From Macrostomum lignano (taxonomy: Eukaryota), in NCBI GenBank assembly GCA_002269645.1, contig NIVC01000710.1, forward strand, positions 1 through 26,763: DNA of 26,763 nt, given 5' to 3'. Below the pieces are notes generated by a model that had not been told where the DNA came from, did no database searches, and saw only the letters and a list, made by a program, of their open reading frames with translations. The position numbers and the translations under genes were made by a program. Below, one piece after another: positions 17,853 through 20,116 of this stretch (positions are counted from its first letter, which is position 1; each line of letters starts with the position of its first letter).

Positions 17853-20116
17853 AGAGACTGGCTGATGCAGAAGAGCGAGCAGCCTTCGTCCGAGGCAAAG
17901 CTCCAACGAGCATTCTCTTCGCTGAGCTTGGGGCAGCAGCAGCAGCAGCAGCAGCAGCGGGCCTTCAGCTCCGGCGGCCTCTGGCCCAACAGTCAACCGG
18001 AAGTCGCTATCAGACAGTCGCAGGCTCTGGTGGCCGCGTTTCCGGTCAGCTGCGGTGAGCTTTTGTAGCCGGGCTTGGGAGGTCACGGGTTCGAGCCCCA
18101 CAGGAGCAGGCATTCATGCTGACTAACCCTGACACTTATGCTGGCTCGACCTGATATTTATGCTGGCTCACCTGACATTTATGCTGGATTCGCTGACACC
18201 TACATGTACGGTACCTCTGGTGCACCCTGTTTGTCTGGCCATGGCACCCATAATTTTGCCTTTTCGATTGCTCAGGACGGCTGCACAAACACATCAACAG
18301 CAGCGGCGGCAAGGCGCGGCCACAGAAGCATCGCGCAGAGACGTCGGAGTCGGCCAAGACGGCCGCCGGTGGCGATGAAGGCGGCGTCTCAACTACGCGG
18401 GCACCGTCTTCACTTGCTGCAGCTTCGAGTGGGCGGACCCTGAGAATGGGAATGGCACAAACCGGACAGGCTGCAGGAAAAACCGGACAGGCTGCAGTAC
18501 AGACCGGACAGGCTGAAGGAAAAACCGGACAGGCTGCAGGACATGCCGGACAGGCTGCAGTACAGACCGGACAGGCTGCAGGACAAGCCGGACAGGCTGT
18601 AGTACAGACCGGACAGGCTGAAGGAAAAACTGGACAGGCTGCAGGACACCTCGAAAGTACAAAAAGACAGGTACAAAAGGTAAAGACTAATTTCAACAAG
18701 ATCCATCACTGATAAGTTGAAAAGTTCCAAATTGGCTTAAAAAATCAGCGGTCGCTGCCCCCCCCTCAGCGCGACCCGTTTGCCAACGCCCAGCCAATCA
18801 CGGCCGGGCCCGGGCTGGACCTGATTCGTCGAATGGGCTGGCGGGAGGGCCAGGGCCTCGGCAGGCAGGGTGAAGGCCGCGTCGAACCCGTGGCGGTTGC
18901 TATGCGAACCGGACGAGCGGGTGAGTGACAGATGGTGGCCCGCTAATCCGCAAGTTGTACAACCCTATACAACTATCAATTGTGCTTAAAATGACTCAGA
19001 CCTTACTTACCTATCCTTCACTTACGTGTGCTGAGCTCAAAACTGCACTTGCACCCGACTCATCACCAACAAAGGCCTGGCCAGTGACGGTGAAAAAACA
19101 GGAATCCGACCTCGGCTGCCGCAGCCCACACCTCGGCCTTGCCCGCCGCCGTCCAGGCAGCCACCAAGGAAGAAACCCGACAGGGCGAGCGCGCAGGCCC
19201 GCATGCACCGGCTCGGCCACCTGAGCCAGAAGTACACCGGCCACTCGCCGCGCTATCGGCTTATCAGAGAGGTGGGGCCGCCAGGAGCCAAGATGTACCT
19301 CTACTCGGTGAGACCGGCTGCGGACCCGCCTGCTACACCGCTATCTGCTAACAATGCCTCTCTACCCTCACTCTACCCCTACTCTGCCACTATATCCCCA
19401 CTCTACCCACCACTTTTCTACTCTACGCACTACTCTGCCATTCTATCCCACTCTACCCACTACTCTGCCACTATATCCCCACTCTACCCACTACTCTGTC
19501 ATTCTATCCCACTCTACCCACTACTCTACCATTCTATCCCACTCTACCCACTACTCTGCCATTCTATCCCACTCTACCCACTACTCTGCCATTCTATCCC
19601 ACTCTACCCACTACTCTACCATTCTATCCCACTCTACCCACTACTCTGCCATTCTATCCCACTCTACCCACTACTCTACCATTCTATCCCACTCTACCCA
19701 CTACTCTGCCATTCTATCCCACTCTACCCACTACTCTGCCATTCTATCCCACTCTACCCACTACTCTACCATTCTATCCCACTCTACCCACTACTCTGCC
19801 ATTCTATCCCACTCTACCCACTACTCTGCCATTCTATCCCACTCTACCGACTACTCTGCCTCCCTACCTACTACACAAGCGGCCTACCTACCACACAGCC
19901 ACACCTGTTGGCACTCAATCAACAGCAGCAACCTCCCCCACGCTGCCGCAGGTCACAGCGCTGCACTGCACCTATCAGGCTGGCCAATTCCGACCAAGCC
20001 GCTGGCTGGCGAAGGCGGCAGCGGCAGAGCTGGCCCTGAGGCACCTGGACCCCGGCGACGCGGCCCCCATGCCAGCTGCGCAGCCGCGGAGCAGGCGGCA
20101 AAAGCATGGACGATGA
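17853..20116 (+). CDS. Divergent SON-like paralog (G-patch plus degenerate dsRBM, no RS region), 5 exons, about 380 aa
   Basis: Exons 17853(ATG 17865)-18054, 18276-18679, 18770-18920, 19075-19307, 19952-20116; phases 1,0,1,0 match SON introns 4-7; 1143 nt from the ATG, open to TGA. Homologous blocks: ALVAAFPVSCG|RLHK (vs [10 protein letters not shown]|QFHR); PFANAQPITAGPGLDLIRRMGWREGQGLGRQGEGRVEPV (G-patch); GLASDGE; RYRLIREVGPPGAKMYLYS|V...WLAKAAAAELALRHL (dsRBM-like). AATAAA at 20241. The 19074 acceptor is AAG, chosen because the exon starts with the same GCCTGGCC as SON exon 7; an in-frame CAG at 19099-19101 is an alternative. Confidence 0.85.
18136..18205. repeat. Short 21-22-bp tandem repeat in paralog intron 1
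   Basis: CTGACA(C/T)TTATGCTGG(C/A)TC, about 3.5 copies. Confidence 0.75.
18461..18649 (+). repeat. Coding 21-bp repeat (7-aa TGQAAGK/TGQAAVQ), 9 copies, in paralog exon 2
   Basis: ACCGGACAGGCTGCAGGAAAA-type units at 18461, 18482 ... 18629, in frame with the flanking splice sites. Confidence 0.85.
19350..19865. repeat. 30-bp minisatellite in paralog intron 4
   Basis: ACTCTACCCACTACTCT(G/A)CCATTCTATCCC, about 16 copies. Confidence 0.96.

Follow-up and report, generated by a model that had tools for sequence, protein, structure and literature searches.

A Transcribed Gene Derived from the 3′ Half of SON in the Flatworm Macrostomum lignano

G-patch proteins determine the place and time of action of the multifunctional helicase DHX15/Prp43. 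Human SON (P18583) and its metazoan orthologues carry, in order, an FPVSxG motif, an extended G-patch and a C-terminal double-stranded RNA (dsRNA)-binding domain (dsRBD). Alternative splicing of human SON also yields the short isoforms B and E, reported antagonists of the full-length protein, which keep the N-terminus and lack the arginine/serine-rich (RS) region, the G-patch and the dsRBD. Degenerate "type B" dsRBDs, such as dsRBD3 of TRBP/PACT and dsRBD5 of Staufen, mediate protein contacts. The G-patch of NKRF, a DHX15 activator, has been solved in complex with the helicase (PDB 6SH6/6SH7); NKRF is a nucleolar protein that contains an R3H domain and recruits XRN2. Here we describe a gene of five exons on the forward strand of Macrostomum lignano contig NIVC01000710.1 (assembly GCA_002269645.1, Mlig_3_7), the whole 26,763 bp of which make up the window that was analyzed. 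The gene occupies positions 17853-20116, about 1 kb 3′ of the SON orthologue of this species (11364-16816). We read it as a functional, transcribed SON-derived gene whose product is likely a cofactor of a DHX15-type helicase uncoupled from the SON speckle scaffold, and we put the probability of this reading at about 0.55.

The SON-derived protein shares with SON the order of the three C-terminal elements and the extended G-patch pattern K+DxF..A.P(I/V)T.G.G...MGW..G.GLG...EP......R.GL, and the intron positions and phases of its gene are those of the neighboring SON orthologue. Unlike SON, it has no RS region and no LLEIAKANAAAM/IDK, HPF(K/Q)LSE (HPFxLxE) or DAWAQS...QAW block, it carries a new heptad repeat, and it is only 380-428 amino acids long, compared with 746 in the M. 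lignano SON and over 2,000 in vertebrate SON. The absence of these blocks sets it apart from SON orthologues, with which it has the C-terminal order at shared intron positions in common; it is a paralogue. Like human isoforms B and E, it is a truncated SON-derived product and a potential modulator of SON, and yet it is their reverse, a C-terminal module only, encoded by its own duplicated gene. NKRF and the SON-derived protein have in common the brace-helix hydrophobic residue, the central Trp, the fold-back Leu and the brace-loop Gly-Leu of the G-patch; the two are not orthologues.

Ancestry and Gene Structure

The upstream gene is a SON orthologue: its protein matches "protein Son" from the beetle Aethina tumida (E 5.6e-30) better than any other named entry from outside M. 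lignano, and SON-specific blocks align. It carries the RS region, the IDK block, the HPFQLSE block (13647), the G-patch and the dsRBD, with Pfam scores of 54.2 bits for the G-patch and 42.1 bits for dsrm. Alignment with vertebrate SON C-termini proceeds block by block through HPFxLxE, FPVSSGxQHR, QAWxKKxQF, the G-patch, GKHPxSAL, GPxH and NKKxAK; the DAWAQ...QAW block is largely degenerate in the M. lignano protein.

The five exons of the SON-derived gene (exons A to E, Table 1) are flanked throughout by AG acceptors and GTGAG or GTAAG donors, and they start in phases 0, 1, 0, 1 and 0, exactly as do exons 4-8 of the upstream SON gene. Their joint frame is open for 384 codons, 380 of them from the ATG at 17865, and closes at the TGA at 20114-20116. 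This exon model bears out the original prediction, made from the letters of the sequence alone, that the region holds homologs of SON exons 4-8 with the same intron phases and an unbroken frame. The encoded protein has 380 residues at this locus and 428 at a second locus described below.

BLASTP aligns the product with the upstream SON protein at 27% identity over 372 columns (E = 3e-24), collinear from the FPVS motif to the end. The SON motifs FPVSxG..H(K/R), K(K/R)DxF, NAQPIT and GLxxxGEKT align in it. NAQPIT, ahead of the G-patch, and GLA, which follows it, are common to the SON-derived protein and the neighboring SON only, and the G-patch is 55% identical to that of the neighbor, compared with 36-49% for vertebrate, beetle and related SON sequences. 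Because the shared signatures and the closest G-patch are both those of the neighbor, the comparison points to a duplication inside the flatworm lineage. The neighboring SON is itself 51-67% identical to those same SON sequences in the G-patch and 38-52% in the dsRBD; the dsRBD of the SON-derived protein reaches no more than 25-32% identity with that of any SON. The duplication is apparently not recent, since the copy retains ancestral states that the neighbor has lost: KRDxF (RDPF, 18770-18785) and GLxxDGEKT (GLASDGEKT, 19075-19100) correspond to vertebrate KKDQF and GLVAEGEKT, whose conserved residues have disappeared from the neighboring M. lignano SON.

The SON-derived gene arose when the 3′ part of SON (exons 4-8) was duplicated in tandem, introns included, and it then diverged fast and asymmetrically; it is the paralogue, and its neighbor the orthologue. 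The SON-derived tandem paralogue that had been predicted is thus supported both by homology and by the SON orthology of the gene next to it. The prediction had also described the copy as having lost the RS region, and this does not hold. The RS region and the IDK block are encoded by SON exons 1-3, outside the duplicated segment, and the intergenic DNA from 16817 to 17900 contains no remnant of those exons. HPFQLSE and IDK, both described as gone, are indeed absent, with HPFQLSE found in the upstream gene only, but IDK was never part of the segment that was duplicated. An assembly artefact was considered as a source of the copy and rejected, since its identity to the parent is as low as 27% and four contigs carry it.

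The N-terminal half of the SON-derived protein, the repeat and the Pro-rich linker are predicted by AlphaFold2 to be disordered. The ninefold TGQAAxx repeat noticed earlier corresponds to a 21-nucleotide (nt) coding minisatellite, for which Tandem Repeats Finder (TRF) gives 9.1 copies. It stays in frame at both loci, with 7 exact TGQA units in the window and 16 at the second locus. The aligner places this TGQAxxx repeat beneath the "PGQFTG(S/T)TGAQ" motif (QFTGSTGAQ) of vertebrate and insect SON, which is absent from M. lignano SON; the repeat might be an expanded remnant of QFTGSTGAQ, or the alignment might be coincidental.

Word-index searches with the full protein or its C-terminal 190 residues returned no relatives outside M. 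lignano from databases in which flatworms are poorly covered. None of the entries stemmed from Logan or another transcriptome source, so that other Macrostomum species evidently fall outside these collections. An exhaustive HMMER search with the G-patch exon alone (50 residues) as query, a design blind to relatives sharing only the dsRBD, matched 386 library proteins at E<=0.001. Among the matches listed, several are very long proteins in which the match lies about 165 residues from the C-terminus, and the seven retrieved proteins of mid length are SON orthologues with SON-specific blocks. Absence from databases that hardly cover other flatworms is weak evidence for calling the gene lineage-specific.

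Table 1. Features of contig NIVC01000710.1, in contig coordinates (aa, amino acids)
Feature	Position	Strand	Description
SON orthologue	11364-16816	+	8 exons; 746 aa in exon model; GenBank gene at same coordinates 738 aa
SON orthologue, exons 1-8	11364-11765, 12238-12698, 13022-13202, 13482-13791, 14115-14437, 15452-15599, 16096-16388, 16694-16816	+	
SON intron satellites	11786-12205		(GTCT)n x103
	13276-13468		20-mer x9.6
	14438-15406		22/23-mers x6-18
	15631-15994		24-mer x15
	16400-16656		(TGTC)n x64
Spacer tandem repeat	17334-17619		14/28-nt unit; between SON and SON-derived gene
AATAAA	17622-17627	+	Sole one between SON stop and acceptor at 17853; 230 nt before acceptor (pattern scan)
Exon A	17853-18054	+	Phase 0, after acceptor ...cctatcag; homologous to 3′ part of SON exon 4; ATG 17865 (MQKSEQ...); 3′ end is the retained SON motif AFPVSCG
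Poly-Gln run in exon A	17933-17958	+	(GCA)8.7
SON-derived gene intron satellite	18111-18198		21/22-mer x3.5
Exon B	18276-18679	+	Start phase 1; homologous to SON exon 5; low-complexity, predicted disordered
Coding minisatellite in exon B	18457-18648	+	21 nt, in frame; TRF 9.1 units; TGQA(A/E/V)(G/V)(K/Q/H)
Exon C (G-patch exon)	18770-18920	+	Start phase 0; encodes RDPFANAQPITAGPGLDLIRRMGWREGQGLGRQGEGRVEPVAVAMRTGRAG; homologous to SON exon 6
Exon D	19075-19307	+	Start phase 1; homologous to SON exon 7; G-patch end (GLASDGEKT), Pro-rich linker, dsRBD helix alpha1 and strand beta1
Last-intron minisatellite	19420-19860	+	30 nt, 14.7 copies; fills most of the intron
Exon E	19952-20116	+	Start phase 0; homologous to SON exon 8; dsRBD strands beta2-beta3 and helix alpha2 (SRWLAKAAAAELALRHL), then basic tail; TGA stop
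Candidate poly(A) signals, SON-derived gene	20197-20246	+	ATTAAA 20197, AATAAA 20241 (pattern scan; putative use)
Tandem repeat	20513-21244		35-nt/277-nt unit; between SON-derived gene and coenzyme A transferase
Ras/Rab-like small GTPase exons	4531-6276	-	Pfam Ras 57.5 bits (5573-5842); P-loop exon 5911-6276
Coenzyme A transferase, 3′ exons	21297-22430	-	Pfam CoA_trans 138 bits; convergent with SON-derived gene
Retroelement pol fragments	22863-25310	+	RT_RNaseH, RT_RNaseH_2, integrase core; in different reading frames
Long tandem-repeat block	3010-3940	+	Several frames open; "LLGQPPRSSVAGPASQILSCWASLPD..."
Long tandem-repeat block	26090-26690	-	Several frames open; "SHGYLSLLMGICLFSWVSVS..."

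The G-Patch, the dsRBD and a Proposed Mechanism

The G-patch core MGWREGQGLGRQGEG is present in the SON-derived product, and the domain (residues 211-250) reaches 47.1 bits where Pfam PF01585 requires 22, which makes it a member of that family. Its best sequence match in the PDB is the G-patch of NKRF bound to DHX15 (6SH6, E 1.6e-5). Mutation of L559, W564, L569, G590 or L591 of NKRF weakens or abolishes DHX15 binding and activation (PMC7132122). These residues supply the hydrophobic position of the brace helix (L559), the central Trp (W564), the fold-back Leu (L569) and the Gly-Leu of the brace loop (G590-L591), and in an alignment to chain 6sh6_B their counterparts in the SON-derived protein are I, W, L, G and L. 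AlphaFold2 places a short helix where the brace helix sits. Judged from this alignment, every position known from experiment to matter for DHX15 binding is retained, in line with the earlier view that the G-patch is intact. The last Gly of the GLG motif is Ala in the SON-derived protein, and likewise in the neighboring SON. As for the likely partner, a recent systematic study groups human SON with DHX15 and calls DHX15 the cognate helicase of SON (bioRxiv 10.64898/2026.06.30.735655).

The C-terminus retains the fold of a dsRBD without its usual RNA-contact residues. AlphaFold2 predicts an alpha-beta-beta-beta-alpha arrangement (helix 228-246, strands 251-258, 265-272 and 275-278, helix 286-301) with a predicted local distance difference test (pLDDT) score of 91-96. 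Foldseek searches with this model return target template-modeling (TM) scores of 0.80 for dsRBD4 of mosquito Staufen and 0.86 for HYL1 dsRBD1, with a root-mean-square deviation of 1.1-1.3 Å to an RNase III dsRBD and of 1.1-2 Å over the range of matches. The canonical dsRNA-contact motifs are absent from all three regions: the Glu of helix alpha1 is His, GPDH has become GPPG, and NKKxAK has become SRWLAK, with NKKDAK at 16742 of the upstream SON corresponding to SRWLAK at 19997. The altered dsRBD of the original prediction is thereby recovered, as a preserved fold with degenerate contact motifs. Its more specific claim that the dsRNA-binding lysines are lost holds for the replacement of NKKDAK by SRWLAK but not for every residue, as the last Lys is kept and the first is an Arg. 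From these substitutions the domain would probably bind dsRNA weakly or not at all, and it may mediate protein contacts instead. Type B dsRBDs offer a precedent, in that they too have the dsRBD fold without the consensus RNA-contact residues. However, the closest structural matches of the SON-derived domain are RNA-binding dsRBDs and not those of type B, and the functional likeness is speculative.

That same structural evidence lends itself to another reading, in which the gene encodes a subfunctionalized SON C-terminus that is a true binder of dsRNA or structured RNA and guides the helicase to particular RNAs; the dsRBD would then not be a domain for protein interaction. The intact fold, the RNA-binding nature of the best structural matches (Staufen dsRBD4, HYL1 dsRBD1, the RNase III dsRBD) and the constraint on the dsRBD exons, in which none of 69 residues differs between loci, would all suit such a protein, and a noncanonical surface could be formed by the Arg and Lys of RWLAK, the one Lys and one Arg that remain in contact region 3, together with the basic tail RSRRQKHGR. 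Consensus residues have nevertheless been replaced in all three contact regions and the Pfam score falls below threshold, and we regard this alternative as possible and clearly less probable than a helicase cofactor that does not depend on canonical dsRNA binding.

The mechanism that we propose for the SON-derived protein follows that of other G-patch proteins. Its G-patch would brace the winged-helix and RecA2 domains of a DHX15/Prp43-type DEAH helicase and stimulate it. Without the RS region and the N-terminal blocks of SON, this stimulation would take place off the speckle scaffold, so that the protein might recruit the helicase elsewhere or draw on a helicase pool shared with SON. The dsRBD, having lost its contact residues, could serve as a protein-contact module or as a noncanonical RNA binder. 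A more elaborate version, which we hold only tentatively and consider improbable in its full form, has the gene encode a soluble DHX15 regulator split from SON, acting as a competitor or as a speckle-independent activator that tunes the quality control of splicing in cells such as neoblasts or those of the germline. If that were true, the rewired dsRBD and the expandable heptad repeat would supply new partners.

Transcription, Constraint and the Boundary with SON

Three GenBank proteins labeled "hypothetical protein BOX15_Mlig020262g2, partial" (PAA46352.1, PAA78041.1 and PAA78044.1) are 100% identical to the predicted product over their 323 residues. A fourth, PAA62377.1 (BOX15_Mlig015457g1, 428 residues), is full-length, starts with MQKSEQ as does the frame from the ATG at 17865, and is 84% identical overall, the difference being due to repeat number. 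The GenBank proteins reproduce all four splice junctions of the exon model. The annotation of this assembly was built only from RNA-seq-based transcript assembly, with ends taken from spliced-leader and poly(A) reads (PMC5730564), and so the shared junctions lend experimental support to the transcription and splicing pattern of the SON-derived gene. The junctions, for which confirmation by RNA-seq had been proposed, are thus the same in transcript-derived models such as PAA46352.1 and PAA62377.1. The gene had also been called probably undescribed. It is already annotated in GenBank and UniProt as hypothetical or as G-patch domain-containing, so that part falls away; a literature search found no functional study of it.

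Four contigs carry the pair formed by SON and its copy; they stand for two loci with 92-95% identity to each other, and the frame is intact in all four. Two of the contigs match the window at about 99% identity, with no difference in the exons, and the other locus is represented by NIVC01001944.1 (92-95% identical to the window). A second locus of this kind fits the duplicated genome of M. lignano as a neopolyploid. Between the loci, SON exons 5-8 (14115-16816, compared with 6244-8967 of NIVC01001944.1) differ at 1 base in 887, with no divergence even at synonymous sites. Elsewhere the difference is 4-5% in SON exons 1-2 and 1-4% in the exons of the SON-derived gene. Such near-identity points to very strong constraint on the 3′ half of SON or to gene conversion there. 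Six of the introns in the two SON-type genes contain a micro- or minisatellite of their own, with copy numbers that vary between paralogous contigs.

The G-patch/dsRBD half of the SON-derived gene is under purifying selection. Over exons C-E, the window and the second locus differ by 8 synonymous and 2 nonsynonymous substitutions (nonsynonymous divergence dN 0.005, synonymous divergence dS 0.058, dN/dS 0.087), an excess of synonymous changes over the 27% of synonymous sites that neutrality predicts (binomial P 6.5e-4). The introns differ by 2-7% between these loci, matching dS, and the dsRBD shows the complete amino acid identity mentioned above. Because of this 8:2 ratio, the intact frame in four contigs and the RNA-seq-derived models, we conclude that the gene is live and not a pseudogene. 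A processed, retro-copied pseudogene would not look like this one, which has an open frame and four introns placed as in the parent, with dN/dS at 0.087 in its domain exons. The findings named beforehand as marks of a pseudogene, namely no expression, dN/dS near 1 or disabling mutations in other haplotypes, were not encountered: transcript-derived models exist, dN/dS is low in the domain-bearing half, and no disabling mutation interrupts the frame in any of the four contigs.

A transcribed but functionless duplicate in slow decay, with its open frame and low dN/dS owed to chance or to gene conversion between loci, is in our view unlikely. Such a copy would account for the strong divergence from the parent (27% identity), the N-terminal half without clear constraint and its unstable coding minisatellite, the missing RNA-contact motifs and subthreshold dsrm score, and the want of relatives found outside M. 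lignano. It fits poorly with a frame of 380 codons that is still open when divergence from the parent is saturating, as only 2 of 20,000 shuffles of the coding sequence were free of stops. Four pairs of splice sites are intact and are used in the transcript-derived models, gene conversion would not yield the 8:2 ratio in the domain exons, all critical positions of the G-patch persist, and the dsRBD core folds with high confidence.

The lone AATAAA of the spacer between the two genes is likely the poly(A) signal of SON. Its distance from the acceptor (230 nt), together with a spacing of less than 1 kb once repeats are subtracted, fits a published 1-kb operon criterion. The acceptor, ...ttcctatcag/AGAGAC (17841-17867), lies 12 nt before the ATG and in phase with it, and the six bases directly preceding the junction, TATCAG, agree only in part with the enriched YTNCAG motif. 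The spliced leader of M. lignano has ATG at its 3′ end (PMC8629364). Were the SON-derived gene trans-spliced to it, the leader ATG would be in frame and would give M-RDWLMQK..., an outcome with a 1-in-3 chance of arising by coincidence. The locus-tag suffix "g2" was considered as a sign of a second gene in the SON transcriptional unit and rejected, as the SON prefix is different (Mlig000652g4). Gene names lend no support to co-transcription because the prefixes come from clustering at 95% (PMC5730564). A UniProt model, A0A1I8H7M8, fuses the end of SON to the SON-derived gene by translating the 14/28-nt repeat, with frame shifts inside exons, and looks like a gene-prediction artefact. Least likely of the alternatives, and a little more doubtful even than a decaying duplicate, is that exons A-E are an alternative 3′ cassette of SON spliced from exon 3 to exon A into an RS-containing isoform with a different G-patch/dsRBD tail: that junction would be in frame (exon 3 ends and exon A starts in phase 0), and the two units share a strand, lie 1 kb apart and are joined in A0A1I8H7M8, but the transcript-derived annotation separates SON from the SON-derived gene under unrelated name prefixes (Mlig000652g4 against Mlig020262g2 or Mlig015457g1), the complete model begins at the ATG 12 nt past the acceptor, reading through a tandem repeat with shifts of frame is typical of predictor artefacts, and an AATAAA sits between the units.

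Several points weigh against our reading of the gene as a functional cofactor of a DHX15-type helicase. Helicase binding, the choice of helicase, localization, RNA binding and the relation to SON are inferred, and the same applies to DHX15 binding, competition with SON and a protein-binding dsRBD as they were originally predicted. The C-terminus scores 20.2 bits for Pfam PF00035 (dsrm), below the cut-off of 23 (E 8.9e-4), and the AlphaFold2 model was built on a shallow alignment of 6 sequences. In SRWLAK, the retained last Lys of KKxAK and the Arg in place of the first Lys leave some RNA binding possible. The selection test draws on 10 substitutions between two loci of one species, and in the nonrepeat part of the N-terminal half dN/dS is about 0.4, which with 8 differing codons is indistinguishable from neutrality. 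Finally, a search of M. lignano papers and supplements for the gene numbers turned up no expression level or tissue pattern (neoblast, germline).

The Rest of the Contig and Biological Meaning

The remaining features of the window are collected in Table 1. The coenzyme A transferase is taken, from its sequence, to be of the SCOT/OXCT type. The pol fragments are a degenerate long terminal repeat (LTR) retrotransposon insertion, and the tandem-repeat blocks near the two ends of the contig are probably noncoding satellites. An AT-rich stretch of 2 kb (9001-11000, GC content 0.28-0.29) lies directly upstream of SON; GC content is 41-59% in the rest of the window.

The SON-derived gene adds a SON-derived member to the G-patch protein family, one that is already annotated and uncharacterized. 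The scope of the finding is a single lineage and an uncharacterized protein, with a mechanism that is expected rather than surprising. As an evolutionary history, it is a clear case of partial gene duplication and asymmetric divergence followed by constraint. The contribution of the G-patch and dsRBD to SON function is hard to separate from its huge RS/repeat scaffold. In M. lignano, evolution has made that separation, placing the SON C-terminal module in its own gene, under selection, beside an intact SON. This flatworm is amenable to RNA interference, in situ hybridization and transgenesis, and with the module in a gene of its own in so tractable an animal, the function of the SON C-terminus becomes directly testable.

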